Positions 11,576 to 44,551 of a stretch of DNA of 64,000 nt are shown here, piece by piece. The stretch lies in assembly GCA_011109175.1 (NCBI GenBank), contig RDEW01000002.1, positions 12,299 to 76,298 of the forward strand. Direction: 5' to 3'. The notes under the pieces were generated by a model that ran no database searches, was not told the origin of the DNA, and saw only the letters and a program-made list of their open reading frames with translations. Source of the stretch: Dicyema japonicum. Taxonomy: Eukaryota; Animalia; Dicyemida. A program made the translations under genes and the position numbers. Position 1 is the first letter of the stretch. Each line of letters opens with the position of its first letter.

Positions 11576-11639
11576 ATTTGTGTCTATCATTTTGCTGTAT
11601 GGGTTAAATCAGATCAGTTCTGAGAAAACACACATGAGA

Positions 11640-11899
11640 GGTAGCTTTCATCAAATTTTCTATTATAAATTTTTAATTATAAAAAACTTTTTGTTTGAAA
11701 ATTTTATAAAATCTAATATTCAATTATTGTTTCTCATTAAAAGTCTATAAAATTGACTAATTGACAAACTAACCCAAAACAAAATCAAGATATAAGCGAG
11801 GATGTTTAATATATTTTAATAATTAAAAACTGTATTAAATAATTCATAATAAAGTTCACGAAACCATGGTGTTCCTCGGAAGCCAGGTTGGGACCACTG
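11640..11899 (+). mobile_element. hAT MITE right end
   Basis: ggttgggaccactg (reverse complement cagtggtcccaacc) ends at 11899 and is followed by atctagat (NNNTANNN). The left boundary is approximate. Confidence 0.5.
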
Positions 11900-12297
11900 A
11901 TCTAGATATTCAAACTATGCTCTCAATAATCTCAAAATTTCTCTCCGAAATCATGAAAAATGATACCAAGTAACAGATAAACCAAGCCTTTATGAATATA
12001 ATTTCTCACTTGAACAACAATATTAATATAAACGAAAGCAAAAATAAAATATCTTATATAACAAAGATTTTACTAGAACTCTTAGTAATCGTTAAGAAAT
12101 TCTTCAACATCCCTAATCTCCTTTGGGGTATTACTGGTCAATACCTCAAGCCCGTCATCAGTTATTAAAATAATCTTCAATTCGAATTCCAATCCCCTTG
12201 TACTTCTCATTCACAAAACAACAATTTTTGTCCAAATATAAATTTACATGTTTCTCATAGCAAATACCAGGTTCAACTGGAACTACAAATCCCGACT

Positions 12298-12888
12298 TCA
12301 AGGGCAATATAGTAACAAGAAAAGTATGATTTTCTGGTTACTATATAATGGTTTAATATTTTTTGTAGAGGAAAGTATGATTTTTTTGTTACTAGTTGAT
12401 GGTTTAATATTATTTGTAGAGGAAAGTATGATTTTCTCGTTACTATTTGCTGGTTTAATATTATTTGTGGAGGAAAGTATGATTTTCCGGTTACTAGGTG
12501 ATGGTTTAATATTATTTGTAGAGGAAAGTATGATTTTCTTGTTACTACGTGATGGTTTAAACATTATTTGTAGAGGAAAGTTTAATTTTCTTGTTAATAT
12601 ATGATGGTTTAATATTTGGAATTGTCATTTTTTGGGTAGACAGTTTAGTTTTATTTTCTGTTTTGATAATTATTCGCTGGACTGTCGTATCTGTAGAATT
12701 CAAACAGTATCGTCCTAAAATAAATAAGTACAACAACCAATAGAACTAAATTTGATAGTATCTCTATTATTAATTATTTTGGTCCTTAAACAAGAAATAG
12801 TGAGAGAAACATCTGAAGAAAATTTTTTAAATATAGTTTGACATTCATAGTCACGATTTTCTCGAATCAATTGTTGATCAAGTGTAAT
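12298..12888 (-). pseudogene. Truncated paralog of the repeat-stalk LAMP-like gene at 29355-30476
   Basis: Reverse complement matches ~29800-30340, including the 23-nt intron and the 51-nt repeats. Signal peptide and TM segment are missing. Confidence 0.75.
12310..12615 (-). repeat. 51-bp coding tandem repeat, ~6 units (IKPxxSNxKIILSSTNN)
   Basis: A 17-aa period is visible in both ORF-track translations. Confidence 0.95.
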
Positions 12889-12909
12889 CGGTATTTTATG
12901 GATGGAAAT

Positions 12910-13680
12910 ATGTTAAAAGATGTCTTGTTTGTTCAGGCCACATTGAAGATCGCAGTGTCGGGTTACAAACAATAATAAGTCGTGTGTGAATTGTGGTTCA
13001 TCCACCCACTTTGCCAATTATGGAAGATGCCCCAAGGCTGTTGAAGCTAACATTGCGAAGAAAAACAAAATTGACCAAAAAAGGAAAGAATCGAATGGAA
13101 AATTATTTCTAAAACGAGAAAATGCCCATAATGGAGAAAGTGAAGTTTCCAAAATTGGAACGAATAAGAAATTAAAGTCAGAGTTTAGAATGTATGGGCA
13201 GACTGGCTGGAATACGACATATAATAAGAAACCTTCTAAAAAAGAAACAGTAGAAGCTTCAACACAGAGAAGAGAGTGGTGCTCTTAAGAAGAGAGGGCA
13301 GCCACCGAAAAAACCAGAAGTAGTCAGGATAACCCTGATTAATGCCCGTTCTCTTCGGAAACGGGCCTCAGTGCTGGTTGCTATAGCCAGCACGATCCAG
13401 ATGGAAGTTCTAATTATAAACGAAACTAAATTGAAGCACATGGATTGGATTTAGCATCTGAAATTGATGACGAATACGAAAGAAAAACGAGAAGAATCGG
13501 TGATTATTACATTGCTTGTGGAAACTCGCATTGTAATTGGGGCTTTTTACGGAGAAGAGACATACGGTGTCTCATGAGAGTGCCCCGATATAGACGACCC
13601 CAAATCTTGGCTTTCCTCTTTAGTTAATGGCTCTTACCTTGTTTAGTTAGTTGGGGTTTTGCGAATAAATCATGTTATCT
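12910..13680 (+). mobile_element. LINE fragment: ORF1 zinc knuckle and start of APE
   Basis: CVNCGSSTHFANYGRC and LINARSLRKR...EVLIINETKL. Confidence 0.7.
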
Positions 13681-13689
13681 GTTNGATGT

Positions 13690-14118
13690 TGTACAATATA
13701 TGCTTTGATAATACAATATAGATCTGAAGATCGTTATGCACAATTAGATGGAAGAGGTTTGAATATAATTTAATTTAGCTAATGACTGTAATCCATCTAA
13801 CGATCCAAATACTCCAATTTGGTATTTTATGAATGGAAATCGACTCAAGGCTATATTAAGTGGGATTATTGAAATCGATGTTTATAATGATAAAAAGAGA
13901 AATTTGAATAACGAAGCGGTTAAAAAAAGTCGTCAAAAGACAAAAATGGCAGACGATGCCTTAAAATTTGAGTTGCAGCGAGTTCAGGTTACATTAATGT
14001 AATATCCTGTTAGGCCCAATTGGATAAAGCAACTGAAGATCTTGAGAAGGCCAAGATTAAAAGACACGTGGTTAAGGAATTCTACTTTAATCTTATTGGG
14101 AACCATTATAACCCTTAA
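13690..14118 (+). CDS. Chimeric spliced ORF: LAMP-like exons fused in frame to a C/EBP-like bZIP domain (5' end lost at the N at 13684)
   Basis: Introns 13757-13778 (22 nt, phase 1) and 13988-14013 (26 nt, phase 0) give TIYALIIQYRSEDRYAQLDGRANDCNPSNDPNTPIWYFMNGNRLKAILSGIIEIDVYNDK-KRNLNNEAVKKSRQKTKMADDALKFELQRVQAQLDKATEDLEKAKIKRHVVKEFYFNLIGNHYNP*. Confidence 0.6.
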
Positions 14119-14571
14119 TATTTAATTTATACGATTTTTTTAATATTTGTATTAAGACTTTTCTCTTGAATAGGGTAGCTAGAAGCTAGCATCCCAACCA
14201 GTAAACCATGCATATTTGGAAGTTACTTGATAAAGAGAGGCTTCATTTCCGAAAATACGATATTAAAATGGGACATGGATAGGAGTTTGATTTTTAACAC
14301 AACAGCATGCTATGAGAGTGGAACAATAACAATAGATATGTGTTACGTCACACATGATTACATGTGATGAACATAAGCGAACATACGATGTCTGATTATA
14401 ACCTCTGTTAATTACTTTTAGGTTTTTTCTAGGATAAATTATTCCGGGTTTTGAAGCGAATAACATTTTAATAACTTATTTTTTCGGAGAGTCTTTAAGT
14501 CGCTCTCTTAGTTTGCATCAAAATTCTTATCCGTACAGCTTATAAAAAATCCTCAAAGTTTTTTAATTCCA

Positions 14572-14640
14572 AGCAGGGCGGGATTCGAACCCAGATTCTT
14601 CGTACACACAACGCTTCCTTAGTTCACAACCTAGGTTTTC
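14572..14640 (-). mobile_element. tRNA-like SINE head fragment
   Basis: Minus strand has gggttcgaatcccgcc (B-box/T-arm) but no complete cloverleaf. Confidence 0.45.
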
Positions 14641-15199
14641 TTATATATCTTGAGTCAATCCATGGTCGTGGAAATCAGAGACATGATCTTTTATCCATCA
14701 TGAAGCAAAGTTGACGTTTTATGTTTTAGAGGTGACCAGAATTGGACAATATATTCATTGACCAGAATTGATTAGACTTTCGTTAAATGAGAGTTTTTAC
14801 ATCGAAAATGCCTAGAAAATTCTGCTTTTTCTAAAAAATTAAAAACGAATTTCCTCGAGTTGTCCGTTACTGGTCTCATCGCTTCCAGAAGTATCAAAAA
14901 ACTTTTGTAAAATTTTTTTCAGGGCGGATCGAGATTCGTCGCTATTTTGATTTATTCCCATATGGGTTCATAGATTTATTTGCAGAAAAGCATGGCATTT
15001 ATTAGTTAAAATTACTAAATTCTAATTTAGATCCCGGAGATTACACTCACAACAGCGACATAACCAATAGAACTGATCTCTACGATTCCTCGTGACTCAT
15101 GATAAACAATATAAATAAAAAACGTATTCGATGTTGATTTTATCAAAGAACTTTAAAATTCAAAAAAAAGTATAGGAATGAAGTTAATCGATATGGTAA

Positions 15200-16560
15200 T
15201 TTTGACATGACTACTAAACAAAAACATATTCACATCAGTTCTATTCACTGGCGAAAAAATTAATGGTACGTACGAATGATAAAACTGCGAATGTTATTAA
15301 TGTTACGAATACTAAAGAGCTGAAAAAAACAGTCGCGCAAGGACAAAGTAACGGCCGCACTCTATTTTTCAACATGAGGTCCTATTGGATTTTTCTGGAA
15401 TTTTTTCTTGTTTTGTCTTCACTTCTGGTCTTTGCCGATATGCATAAGAATGTTTGGAATGTCTGAAGTGATAATATTATTAAGAAAATCTGTGTCAGCT
15501 TGAAGTCTCATATTGTTAAAGATATCTTTCTCAGATTCAACGTATTCTGTGTAAATTTGGGCCATTATCAAAGTTACATATCAAAGAGTTTTTGTGGTTG
15601 GAATAAAGAATTTTCGAATCGAGAAGAAATAGCGTTAGCAGATAAATATCTAATTCAATTCGGACGTATCTGCGACTATACGGGAAAAAGATATTCTCAA
15701 GTTACGCAAAAACAACTTTGCAGGACTTATTGTTGTAAAACTAATACGAAAAATAAATCAACTAGGGACGAAGTTAAGATACTGAGTTGACAGGACAGAG
15801 AGTGAAGTTTTATCCAAAATATTTTCTTTGATCAGGACGCGTAATACACAGATTGGCGTTCTTTGGGCATGTTGTCCGCTTTGATATCCTGGAATGAACC
15901 ATCATGCGGAGCAATATTACTTGAAAAAGAAAACTTGGTTGACCAGCACTCGCTGGCTATCCACGGTAGAAGACGTCACGTAAAAGCCTATATTAAAGCT
16001 ACTCCAAATTGCGACAGATCGGGGAGAGTGGAGAAAATTGGCTCATGAGATCTCCAAAATAACATTACATAAAAGATAATTCGGAAAGAAATTGGAAGGA
16101 CAAAGTTTCAAAATCGATAATAGTAACCCGTCTTTTTAAAAAAGATATAAAAAAACTTGTGTGTTCTAGGAAGTGAGTACTTCAAACAAGCTATTTTCTA
16201 CCCGATGGAAAAAATTCCTTCTGTTTTCAAGCATCATTCGAAAATATTCAAGGCGTTAATCCAATGGATTTAATTCTTGATGTAAGGAAAGAACATTTGA
16301 TGGATTTAATTAAATATCGTGAGACGAGGCTAAGAACCATAAATGAAGTAGTTACCATTTGGAAGTCAAATCAGCGATCAGAAGTAGTAGATCAAACGCC
16401 GGTACACGATTATATAAACATCTTTATGTTCACGGAGGGACCGGACGTCCTATCTCATGTCCTAAAGAAATTGTTCAATTCAAGTCTGTGTTTGGATTTA
16501 TTCCTTACGTGATCTATAGTGAGTGAAATAGTGAAAACGGTCACTAAGTCAGGAAAACAG
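15200..16560 (+). mobile_element. Degenerate RTE-like LINE 3' region plus a further RT fragment
   Basis: LAFFGHVVRFD, TRWLSTVEDV and IATDRGEWRKL resemble the RTE C-terminus; EGPDVLSHVLKKLFNSSL is an RT N-terminal motif. Boundaries are approximate. Confidence 0.55.
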
Positions 16561-21780: not shown

Positions 21781-21821
21781 TTATTTCAAAAAGGGAAACG
21801 AGTAAATTAATATTAACCATT

Positions 21822-22989
21822 CTAAAGCATTGGAATATTTTCGAATGGTTCTACTATATTTCTTCGACGTTTGATGTAGATAACCCAAGTGACCCCAATA
21901 ATCATAAGTACCACTATAGTGATGGAAATTACCAGGAATTTATAATTATGTGAAACACGGAACATTTTCTTTCTTTTACTTTCAAAACATCCAGAATCTA
22001 AATTTACCATAATGCAAACCATTTCCAATGAAATTTAAATTCATATCATTCCGAAAAAATTGAGTTTTTAATGGTGAAAATCTAGCGCGAAGTTTAGGGA
22101 AATTAATTTTAAAATTTTACAGTTAAAGTAATTTCCTACGTCGACATAACTCGGATTATAGGATACCATGTCCAAATATTTTTGCTTTTGATAAAAGTAA
22201 TTTTCGAAATATAATATTTATTTTGTTTTAATTTAAAAATAAAAAATATTTCAAAATTGTCTTGATTTATATGCACCTTAATTCCATCGTTTTCAATATC
22301 AATTTTTGGACTTTGACATTCTTTAAAAAAATATTTAATTGTCCTCTATGATCAACTTTTAAATTTTACATATTCACTAATGTAGTCGATTTCAATATTT
22401 CCAATTAATATAGCCTTGAGTCGATTTCTATCCATAAAATACCAAATTGGAGTATATGGATCGTTAGATGGATTACAGTCATTAGCTAGATTAAATTATA
22501 TTCAAACCTTTCCATCTATATGTGAATAAAGAGATTTAGTTCTATATTCTATTATCAAAGAATATATTGAGACAGAATAGTCATTTCCCAAACTGATGGA
22601 AGTATCTCCACATCTGTAATATTCTCCATTTTTGATTTCTGTGATGTTTTTTGTATTTATGTAGGTTTTATTATCTTTGATGATTTAAAATAAATTACTA
22701 GAGTTTAATTTAATTTTCAATATTATGCTATAAATTTTTTAGATGGTTGAATGAAAAGTTCGATAGTTAAATTATTTTTCTTGAATTGATGCTTGGGAGA
22801 AAAATCGTAAGTATTAATTTTGATTCTGAATTCATCACAAATTCTCTACAATTGCAAATTATAAAATACATTCTCATGGATATTTTCAAAAAGCCATCTC
22901 CATATAATTTCATACCATGTATACCAATGTTAGTTGCATTATTTGATGAAAAACAAAAATATTAACAATATATTGAATGAACACGTCAT
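21822..22989 (-). pseudogene. LAMP-like type A membrane protein, copy 1 (frameshifted)
   Basis: Hydrophobic N-terminus, two Cys-flanked domains, 22-nt phase-1 intron at 21998-22019 (FIGN|DSGC), TM segment FLVISITIVVLMIIGVTWVIYI and a basic stop-transfer motif. Homologous to 38377-39612 and 43322-44551. Confidence 0.65.
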
Positions 22990-29354: not shown

Positions 29355-30476
29355 ATGACTTTATCACTGTGTGGATATGAATTATTAATTATTTTAATAA
29401 GTCCTGTAATTCCATATCAAATGGTTTATACTAATGTTGAGTTAAATCATTTAAATAACTACAACATTGCATGTATGACTAAACGTGTAAATCCCTGGAA
29501 TGCTCGAAATAAAGCACTTTTAAGTGCACACATAGATGTAACATATGTGAAAGATTATAAAGTTTGTAATTTTTATTAATATTAGAATATGAATTTCGTA
29601 TTTAATGAGGAAAATTCAAACTTATATAGAATTGAATTAAATGATAAAATTGTTCTAATTTTATCATCACATGATATTAATTTATATTTTACGTTCATTT
29701 TGAAACCTGGAAAGATTTATTTACTTGCAAAAATAGAACTATCGATTAGTAACTATTTTATTAATTATCAGATCATTCTGATGTTCACACAATTACACTT
29801 GATCAACAATTGATTCCAGAAAATCATGACTATGAATGTCAAACTATATTTAAAAATTTTTCTTCAGATGTTTCTCTCACTATTTCTTGTTTAAGGACCA
29901 AAATAATCAATAATAGAGATACTATCAAATTTAGTTCTATTGGTTGTTGTACTTATTTATTTTAGGACGATACTGTTTGAATTCTACAGATAAGACAGTC
30001 TATCGAATTATTATCAAAACAGAAAATAAAACTAAACTGTCTACCCAAAAAATGACAATTCCAAATATTAAACCATCATATAGTAACCGGAAAATTAAAC
30101 TTACCTCTACAGATAATATTAAACCATCATATAGTAACAGGAAAACATACTTTCCTCTACAAAAAATATTAAACCATTATATAGTAACCAGAAAATCATA
30201 CATTCCACTACAAATAATATTAAACCAGCATATAGTAACAAGAAAATCATACATTCCTCTACAAAATAATATTAAACCAGCATATAGTAACAAGAAAATC
30301 ATACATTCCTCTACAAATAATATTAAACCATTATATAGTAACAGAAAGTAATAATATCCATTCTTTACTGTGTCGTTGATTTCCTGGCTTTGGTCTTGAT
30401 AATCATAGTAATTGTTTTATACCATAGAAGAGATCAATTTAGGTTATTAACAAAAACTAATTCATTGTCTGGTTAA
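29355..30476 (+). CDS. LAMP-like type B protein: signal peptide, one LAMP-like domain, 17-aa repeat stalk and an out-of-frame TM/tail
   Basis: Introns 29562-29585 (24 nt), 29749-29771 (23) and 29943-29965 (23) join the ORF-track pieces into one frame ending at TAA 30349-30351. A TM segment VIISILYCVVDFLALVLIIIVIVLY and tail HRRDQFRLLTKTNSLSG* follow in the -1 frame. Confidence 0.7.
30067..30348 (+). repeat. 51-bp coding tandem repeat, 5.5 units
   Basis: Units start at 30067, 30118, 30168, 30219, 30271 and 30322 (lengths 51, 50, 51, 52, 51). Confidence 0.95.
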
Positions 30477-38376: not shown

Positions 38377-39612
38377 TTAAATTGGCATATATTCAGACAA
38401 CTTTGTATGCCTAAAAAGATTGATTACAGCTCCAATAAGTCCAATAATCATGAATACTACCACAATGAGGGTAATTTCTATTATTTTAGAATTTTTTGAA
38501 ATAAAAGAATTATCGTTTCCTTGAATTATTTTAAAATCTTTTGAAAGAGTGAAAAAATTTTTTCTTCTATGCATAACTTTCGAAACACTCAGAATCTAAA
38601 TTTACTATAAATGTCACCATTCCAATGAAATTAAAATTCGAATCATTCCGATAAAACTGAGCTTTTAATGATGAAAATTTAGCTCGAATTTTAGGGAGAT
38701 GTATATAAAACACTTTACAATTAAAGTAAGTTCCGATATCGATATAATTTGGATGATTATTATACCATGTTCCAACATTTTGGCTTCTGAAGCTAAAATT
38801 AATTTCCGATATATAATATTTATTTTGTTTTAATTTTAAAATAAAAAATATTTCAATCCGGTCTATCTGTAAATGTATTTTAATTTTATCGTTTTCAAAA
38901 TCAATTTTTGGAGTTTGACATTCATGTGAAATATGTTGATATGTCCGCTATAATCAAATTTAAAATATTACAAATTTATCAATGTAAAAATCGATTTCAA
39001 TTTTACCACTTAATATTGCGAAGAGTCGATTTCCATCCATAAAATACCAAATTGGAGTATCTGGATCGTTAGATGGATTACAGTCATTAGCTAGATTAAA
39101 TTATAAAAAAAACCTCTTCCACTTATAAGAGTATTACAGGACTAGCTCCATATTGTATTATCAAAGAATATATTGTGACAGAGTAGTCATTTCCCAAACT
39201 GATGGAATTATTTCCACATCTGTAATATTCACCATTTTTGATTTCTGTGATTTTTTTTGTATTTGTGTAGATTCTATTATCTTTGATGATTTAAAATTAA
39301 ATTACTGGAATTTAATCTAATTTTCATTATTATGTTATAGAATTTTTTAGAAGGTTGAATAAAAAATTCGAAATTTAAATTATGTTTCACGGTGTGATAC
39401 TCGAATGATAAATCGTAAGAATCAATTTTGATTCTGAATACATCAATTATTCTCTATAATTGTGAATTATAAGATACATTCTCATGGATATTCGTCAAAA
39501 AACAATCTCCATACAATTTCATACCATGTAGATCAAACTTAGCTGACATTTTTGTGATGAAAGACAAAAATATTAACAACATAAAAATATTGAATGAACA
39601 CGTCATATACAT
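38377..39612 (-). pseudogene. LAMP-like type A membrane protein, copy 2
   Basis: After the 24-nt intron at 38948-38971, a ~100-codon open exon reads RTYQHISHECQ...IGTYFNCKVFYIHLPKIRAKFSSLKAQFY. TM segment IIEITLIVVVFMIIGLIGAVINLF and C-terminal EYMPI*. Several 1-2 nt indels. Confidence 0.7.
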
Positions 39613-43321: not shown

Positions 43322-44551
43322 TTAAATTGGCATATATTCAGACAACTTTGTATGCCTTAGAAGATTGATTACAGCTCCAATAATCCAATAATCATGAGTA
43401 CTACCACAATGAGGGTAATTTCTATTATTTTAGAATTTTTTGAAATAAAAGAATTATCGTTTCCTTGAATTATTTTAAAATCTTTTGAAAGAGTGAAAAA
43501 ATTTTTTCTTCTATCTGCATAACTTTCGAAACACTCAGAATCTAAATTTACTATAAATGTTACCATTCCAATGAAATTGAAATTCGAATCATTCCGATAA
43601 AACTGAGCTTTTAACGATGAAAATTTAGCTCGAATTTTAGGGAGATAAATATAAAACTCTTTACAATTAAAGTAAGTTCCGATATCGATATAATTTGGAT
43701 GATTATTATACCATGTTCCAACATTTTGGCTTCTGAAGCTAAAATTAATTTCCGATATATATAATATTTATTTTGTTTTAATTTTAAAATAAAAAATATT
43801 TCAATCCGGCCTATCTGTAGATGTATTTTAATTTTATCGTTTTCAAAATCAATTTTTGGAGTTAGACATTCATGTGAAAAATGTTGATATGTCCGCTATA
43901 ATCAAATTTAAAGTTTTACAAATTCATTAATGTGAAAATTAATTTCAATTTTACCACTTAATATAGCGAAAAGTCGATTTCTATTCATAAAATACCAAAT
44001 TGGACTATTTGGTCGTTAGATAAATTACAGTCATTAGCTTAATTAAATTCTATAAAAACCTCTTCCATTATATTTGCATAAAAAGGACTAGCTCCATATT
44101 GTATTATCAAAGAATATATTGTGACAGAGTAGTCATTTCCCAAACTGATTTTAGTATCTCCACATCTGTAGTATTCTCCATTTTTGATTTCTGTGATTTT
44201 TTTCGTATTTGTGTAGGTTTTATTATCTTTGATGATTTAAATTAAATTACTGGAGTTTAATCTAATTTTCATTGTTATGTATAGAATTCTTAGAAGGTTG
44301 AAAACCTCGAAAATTAAATTGTGTTTAGTGTTTTCATACTTCAATTTATTTTTGAGAGTACAATAATTGATTCTGAATACATCACTTTTTATCTATAATT
44401 GTAAATTATATAAGACATTCTCATGGATATTCGTCAAAACACAATCTCCATACAATTTCATACTATTTAGATCAACCTTAGCAGCAATTTTTGTGATGGA
44501 AGACAAAAATATTAACAACATAAAATTATTGAATGAACACGTCATATACAT
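43322..44551 (-). pseudogene. LAMP-like type A membrane protein, copy 3
   Basis: MYMTCSFNNFMLLIFLSSITKIAA signal-like start, GEYYRCGDTKISLGNDYSVTIYSLIIQY and C-terminal EYMPI*. Contains an internal stop and 1-nt indels. Duplicated with flanks (~42900-44650 versus ~38115-39720). Confidence 0.7.

Follow-up and report, generated by a model that had tools for sequence, protein, structure and literature searches.

Dicyema japonicum is an octopus parasite, and the DNA analysed here is a 64-kb stretch of its genome assembly (C112:12299-76298), hereafter the window; positions are counted within the window unless another coordinate system is given. The published assembly comprises 67.5 Mb in 377 scaffolds and was generated with Platanus, Falcon, SSPACE, GapCloser and HaploMerger (PMC6736024).

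Within the window, a fragment of a LAMP-like gene is joined in frame to a bZIP domain (Table 1). After removal of two GT-AG introns the forward frame contains no stop between 13687 and its terminating TAA (14116-14118), and a single uninterrupted exon (13779-13987) spans the LAMP/bZIP join. A first-pass annotation of the sequence had described a LAMP frame running into the bZIP segment across a 26-nt intron, with neither stop nor frameshift in the visible spliced codons; translation and the GT-AG borders bear out both observations. Only two ATGs, at 13672 and 13829, are in frame. The latter lies inside LAMP exon B and opens an ORF of 87 codons, which is the length of the parental bZIP protein described below; its product would carry a 21-aa LAMP-derived head where the parent has a 21-aa head of its own. 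The spliced model was queried exon by exon, and a protein word search of public predicted proteins with the stop-free 77-aa frame 13769-13999 returned no match.

Table 1. Features at and around the LAMP/bZIP join (window coordinates unless a contig is named).
Feature	Position	Strand	Description
Flank P	11590-12306	+	87% to C375:12692-13409; also 93% to C375:63470-63642
Type B LAMP-like fragment, putative filler	12325-12888	-	564 bp; repeat-stalk part only; 93% to window 30353-29792
LINE-derived repeat	12902-13692	+	~790 bp; young, high-copy; copies share the tail end, then diverge
First in-frame ATG	13672-13674	+	inside repeat tail; in-frame stop before it, at 13666; 132-codon spliced ORF
Exon A remnant, LAMP-like (type A)	13693-13756	+	3' part: 21 codons + 1 base
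LAMP-like intron, retained	13757-13778	+	22 nt, GT-AG, phase 1; conserved in paralogues
Exon B, LAMP-like, nearly complete	13779-13896	+	paralogue exon ends 1-3 nt later at GT donor
Junction microhomology TAAAAA	13891-13896	+	common to LAMP exon end and parental bZIP exon 2 start
bZIP exon 2: basic region and zipper start	13891-13987	+	bZIP_2 32.6 bits; 98% identity to C168:131831-132070
bZIP intron	13988-14013	+	26 nt, GT-AG, phase 0; also in parental gene and C7 copy
bZIP exon 3: zipper remainder, C-terminal tail, TAA	14014-14118	+	CACGTG at 14065-14070
Flank Q, ancestral 3' flank of the bZIP locus	14119-16485	+	C168 (to 14654), C375:14560-15514, C375:63656-65900
Other LAMP-like loci in the window	21800-22660, 38377-39300, 43690-44220	-	
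Other LAMP-like locus in the window	29355-30476	+	

The 3' half encodes a bZIP_2-type domain

A profile search, which the first-pass annotation had named as a check on its bZIP call, supported it: the exon 13781-13987 matched Pfam bZIP_2 (PF07716) at 32.6 bits (E 8.3e-8), above the curated cut-off of 22.3, and in a six-frame scan of the whole genome the domain scored 32.9 bits, ranking fourth among the genome's bZIP_2 matches. The N-x7-R signature is formed by an Asn at 13907-13909 and an Arg at 13931-13933, within the basic region NNEAVKKSR. A leucine occupies R+10 of the canonical register, followed by Val, Ala and Ala at R+17, +24 and +31. Because the heptad leucines (13973, 14020 and 14041) fall instead at the other core position, R+14, +21 and +28, the zipper is short and atypical. 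Thus, the leucines spaced by seven that had been noticed originally are present, but outside the canonical R+10/+17/+24/+31 register. The description of the domain as C/EBP-like is best put more broadly. Its N-x7-R signature and its bZIP_2 match hold; the closest solved structure was NFIL3, at an E value of only 0.19, and C/EBP was absent among the matches listed. We therefore read the domain as bZIP_2-type.

The bZIP segment is a duplicate of an intact gene

Searching the genome DNA with the window bZIP sequence identified three further copies, on C168, C7 and C375. The parental locus, which the earlier annotation had proposed to look for, was found at C168:131831-132070. It is a complete three-exon bZIP gene that encodes 87 aa and is 98% identical to the window copy. 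Its first exon consists of 20 codons and two bases (MPARIPVCMHIQNNKEYIEY) and is followed by a 23-nt intron; exon 2 begins T AAA AAG AGA and leads, as in the window, through a 26-nt intron into exon 3.

The remaining two copies are in poorer condition. The C7 copy (within C7:23792-26998) is 91% identical, has many non-synonymous changes and a replaced 3' end, and its first intron ends in TG rather than AG (minus strand 1707-1730 of that interval); it looks decayed. On either side of a single N at position 1947 of the same interval, some 150 nt including exon 1 occur twice without having been merged, a scaffolding artefact. At C375:14399 the copy is dead: an upstream block, Y, abuts the middle of exon 2, and the sequence has one 1-nt and one 34-nt deletion. 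The genome thus contains a small duplicated bZIP family, in which the parent is intact, the window copy is fused and at least two others have decayed. Exon 3 of the window copy contains a palindrome, CACGTG, that the parent and the dead C375 copy also carry; in the C7 copy it has become CACCTG.

The surroundings of these copies point to how the locus was once organised. The sister locus (C375:12692-15514) has flanks P (window 11590-12306) and Q (window 13935-15093) in common with the window, and between them lies Y, a block of 990 bp. The same block precedes the bZIP gene in C168, C7 and C146. Outside C168 and C7, the exon 1 region is reduced to remnants, at C146 and C2. From the position of Y upstream of the gene at those three loci, and from P and Q at the borders of the sister locus, we derive the ancestral arrangement: P came first, followed by Y and the 5' region, then by the three exons in order, and last by Q. 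The window bZIP therefore lies in its own old locus, and the LAMP pieces are incoming filler.

At another of the segmental duplicates (C375:63656-65900), P abuts Q at the equivalent of 14236 and the bZIP gene has been deleted. A 260-nt block (window 14641-14900) differs from this copy at only 1-2 positions, and the two copies are otherwise about 9% apart; a near-identical block of this kind suggests gene conversion among the segmental duplicates. In three copies of flank Q, the minus strand at 14573-14600 resembles a tRNA 3' end (GGGTTCGAATCCCGCC), a stretch that is absent from the C168 copy; ARAGORN and Rfam scans returned no gene there.

The 5' half is a fragment of an expanded LAMP-like family

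With the two LAMP exons as a tblastn query we found three paralogues on the minus strand of the window and, genome-wide, at least 102 candidate loci, at least 40 of which were scored. The family clusters on C112, C168 and C375. Among the matches listed, the fragment 13693-13896 is closest to C375:55928-56129, at 93% identity overall (98% in exon B and about 80% in exon A). Compared with this paralogue, the LAMP homology runs to 13896 rather than stopping at 13894 as first annotated. The fragment amounts to about 59 codons, the last 21 of exon A plus exon B; paralogues carry exon A at least 30 codons further upstream, and these are missing from the window copy. The annotation had also singled it out as the only copy with the phase-1 intron in register. 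That holds within the window but not genome-wide, where 9 of the 11 nearest paralogues share the register. One patch of exon A, equivalent to 13717-13746, is strongly divergent between copies that are otherwise 85-93% identical.

The name 'LAMP-like' is reasonable but not proven on this sequence evidence. Pfam searches of the fragment and of single paralogue exons gave no LAMP match. A genome scan with the Lamp2-like luminal profile PF01299 gave six sub-threshold matches of 15-19 bits (best 19.3, against a cut-off of 27.2), and the same profile had no matches in control genomes. Two of the six (C1:846975 and C374:140701) lie no more than about 100 nt downstream of exon B matches and therefore fall in the next exon of family members; in these two loci the exon after exon B matches PF01299 positions 49-108, below threshold. 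In addition, the paralogue at 38377-38574 on the minus strand ends in a transmembrane helix, a short tail and a C-terminal YMPI, a Y-x-x-hydrophobic motif of the kind found in LAMPs. The window fragment itself (13693-13896) has no signal peptide, no membrane anchor and no Y-x-x-hydrophobic tail.

Neither bZIP nor LAMP is mentioned in the two dicyemid genome papers, and a literature search found no paper pairing dicyemids with LAMP. The expansion of the LAMP-like family may be related to endocytic feeding; with 100 or more loci in a species that takes up its food in this way, the family is perhaps a more interesting lead than the fusion.

A repeat and a LAMP-B fragment lie upstream of the fusion

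Upstream of 13693 there are no LAMP 5' exons and no LAMP promoter, no signal peptide, and no bZIP promoter or bZIP exon 1. Instead, the LAMP fragment directly follows a LINE-derived repeat that contains the end of a gag-like CCHC (zinc-knuckle) ORF, the start of an endonuclease, an AATAAA at 13664-13669 and a (TGTTATC)n tail. The genome has at least 173 candidate copies of this repeat, of which 81 were scored; many are 97-100% identical, and the window repeat is 99-100% identical to other copies. It is non-autonomous, and it appears to be active currently or to have been so very recently. The first 433 nt of the repeat also form tandem arrays, for example at C334:1316237-1317399.

This arrangement disposes of two earlier suggestions. 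The single N at 13684 had been thought to obscure the upstream join, but it lies within the repeat tail and hides no LAMP exons. The idea that a LAMP 5' end sits behind the N or upstream of the repeat was ruled out, as the tail extends to 13692 and what lies beyond the repeat is a LAMP-B fragment on the opposite strand. The proposal of a secreted bZIP effector had depended on a signal peptide in a missing 5' end. No signal peptide was found there, since the sequence upstream of 13693 is repeat tail and then minus-strand LAMP-B, and the secreted-effector idea is unsupported.

The two genes are joined at exon borders through a short overlap

The window sequence becomes homologous to the parent at 13891, exactly where parental exon 2 starts, and the exon end of the nearest LAMP paralogue reads ...GAT AAA AAA/GT. 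The LAMP and bZIP homologies overlap by 6 nt, TAAAAA, and both breakpoints fall within a few bases of exon borders. Because the two homologies overlap in TAAAAA, the join would be microhomology-mediated. A true exon-exon join would read ...AAAAAA+TAAAAAG, which is 7 nt longer than the sequence observed and out of frame. Because 7 nt of this join are missing and the 22-nt and 26-nt introns are both retained, we read the fusion as a DNA-level event and not as a retrocopy.

The bZIP protein was constrained and the fusion is young

Over 66 codons, the window copy and its parent are 100% identical in protein, with five synonymous differences (13915, 13921, 13927, 13960 and 14034) and no non-synonymous difference at 36.7 synonymous and 161.3 non-synonymous sites (P = 2e-4). 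We considered whether the 98% identity stems from a recent conversion by the parent, and rejected this: the 5/36.7 synonymous divergence is close to that of the flanks, and the window copy shares its flanks with another locus.

We then polarised the changes with the other copies of the locus. Changes unique to the window numbered 1-2 in 227 nt of coding sequence and intron, both synonymous, versus 16 in 478 nt of flanks (Poisson P = 0.019). For the coding positions that the window copy and the dead sister copy have in common, there were 0 events on the window side versus 9 on the sister side, compared with 16 versus 21 in the flanks (Fisher P = 0.018); as the flanks are a mosaic with near-identical blocks and gene conversion, such rate comparisons are indicative rather than exact. 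At the flank rate about five non-synonymous changes would be expected on the branch of the window copy, and none was seen, which argues for selection on this copy. By this indicative comparison, the bZIP protein was kept by selection through most of the copy's independent history.

LAMP exon B and the adjoining intron contain no window-unique changes in 139 nt (P = 0.0095 if they were as old as the branch), and, judged by sequence divergence, the LAMP piece and the repeat are young. If the fused copy has been dead since the fusion, zero changes at approximately 300 free sites would, by rate arithmetic, make the fusion younger than about 30% of the branch. Because youth alone explains the lack of changes, the intact frame does not separate a gene that is still working from one that has just been broken. 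As a fallback, the first-pass annotation had offered a chance in-frame junction of two dead fragments. The chance junction fits, but the bZIP half was not long dead, given zero non-synonymous changes where about five were expected.

Origin of the fusion

We favour, at somewhat better than even confidence, a real and very young fusion at the DNA level, in which a functional bZIP paralogue was beheaded and left in frame by chance; the result would be a freshly disabled gene and not a new one. The bZIP locus, arranged as P, Y, gene and Q, was duplicated, and the window contains one duplicate, whose protein remained under purifying selection after the duplication. In the proposed sequence of events, Y, the 5' region, exon 1 and intron 1 would then have been lost in a complex rearrangement that put filler in their place: the minus-strand LAMP-B fragment, the young LINE-derived repeat and 204 bp of a LAMP-A gene. 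The final join would have used 6-7 nt of microhomology (TAAAAA/G) to link the end of a LAMP exon to the start of bZIP exon 2, by either microhomology-mediated end joining or template switching, and would be in frame by accident. The resulting copy has none of the LAMP 5' exons, and hence no signal peptide, and no recognisable promoter of either parent.

The strongest competitor, which we nevertheless consider unlikely, is a working young chimeric gene that is transcribed through read-through from the repeat or from a cryptic promoter and whose variant protein pairs with the parental bZIP or competes with it. Translation would putatively start at ATG 13829 (87 aa) or 13672 (132 aa), and in either case the core basic region and the zipper would be retained. 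Much of the coding evidence fits such a gene: the spliced frame is open and in frame across the join with two GT-AG introns, the domain scores above the bZIP_2 curated cut-off, the protein is identical to that of the parent with synonymous differences only, coding evolution was slower than in the dead sister copy, and the ORF from 13829 has exactly the parent's 87 codons. The placement of both breakpoints at exon borders, for which we estimate a random chance of about 0.2%, could also hint at selection. However, the window copy has lost the parental promoter and exon 1, and with that exon the KEYIEYI extension of the basic region, and the LAMP promoter and 5' exons are absent. The AATAAA in the repeat tail would tend to terminate read-through transcripts, youth accounts equally well for the absence of changes, and an in-frame join has a 1 in 3 chance. 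Quite unlikely, on the same evidence, is the specific scenario in which microhomology joining precisely at exon borders gave a constrained bZIP paralogue a LAMP-derived head in place of its first exon, and this very young gene is live and makes an 87- or 132-aa bZIP variant that pairs or competes with its parent.

Very unlikely, in our assessment, is an assembly artefact, in which the LAMP/bZIP join would be a chimeric extension of a contig end near a scaffold join (the N at 13684 is at most 210 nt away). The assembly combined short reads with PacBio data and was gap-closed and haplotype-merged (PMC6736024), the C7 copy shows a single N flanked by an obvious duplicated overlap, and the LAMP-like and bZIP families are both multi-copy. 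Yet the overlap at the join, of 6-7 nt, is far shorter than assembler k-mers or read overlaps, and the LAMP fragment is identical to no other assembled copy among the matches listed (best 93% overall, exon A about 80%). Moreover, the N at 13684 is the last in the window, and the sequence from 13685 to the window end contains none.

An RNA-mediated origin, in which a chimeric or trans-spliced LAMP-bZIP transcript was reverse-transcribed by LINE machinery and inserted, could account for breakpoints a few nucleotides from a donor and an acceptor and for the LINE-derived repeat directly upstream, but we regard it as extremely unlikely, because the neighbouring 22-nt and 26-nt introns are retained, the exon-exon join would be out of frame with 7 nt of it missing, and the bZIP part stands in its ancestral locus, syntenic for flanks P and Q, with flank Q unprocessed; retroposition of a spliced chimeric RNA is rejected on the retained introns and the ancestral flank.

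On the preferred reading of a freshly disabled duplicate, the locus documents how segmental duplicates have been rearranged, with microhomology joins, filler DNA and the young LINE-derived repeat all taking part. Were the fusion live, it would show exon shuffling while still under way, and among introns of 22-26 nt. Were it expressed, it would offer a dated case of a gene born through fusion at exon borders, in an animal genome that is among the most reduced, and would add a new variant to a very small transcription-factor repertoire.

Comparison with known systems

The bZIP half resembles C/EBP, PAR and NFIL3-type bZIPs in its N-x7-R signature, with the Ala-Val and Ser-Arg typical of C/EBP, in the leucine at R+10 and in a bZIP_2 score over the curated cut-off. 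Parental exon 1 encodes a Tyr seven residues before the invariant Asn, as in C/EBP and PAR proteins. By contrast with these families, the parent is very small, at 87 aa, and its zipper is short, with leucine at 'a' and Val, Ala and Ala at 'd'. The window copy further departs from the extended basic region of the C/EBP type, as it lacks the N-terminal, Tyr-containing extension that parental exon 1 encodes.

With the LAMP family (PF01299; LAMP1, LAMP2 and CD68), the likeness lies in the helix and YMPI tail of the intact-looking paralogue at 38377-39300 on the minus strand and in the sub-threshold PF01299 matches of the exon after exon B at two loci. Unlike in that family, every exon scores below the Pfam cut-off, at least 102 candidate loci amount to a huge expansion, and the window fragment is reduced to about 59 luminal-domain codons, with no signal peptide, anchor or tail.

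Young chimeric genes and pseudogenes that arose by DNA rearrangement between duplicated segments have been catalogued in Drosophila and in plants. The fusion described here shares with them its retained introns, short microhomology at the junction, and a patchwork of gene fragments and a transposon within segmental duplications, in which one partner was recently duplicated. It differs in that its breakpoints both coincide with exon borders, although the introns of this genome are 22-26 nt long.
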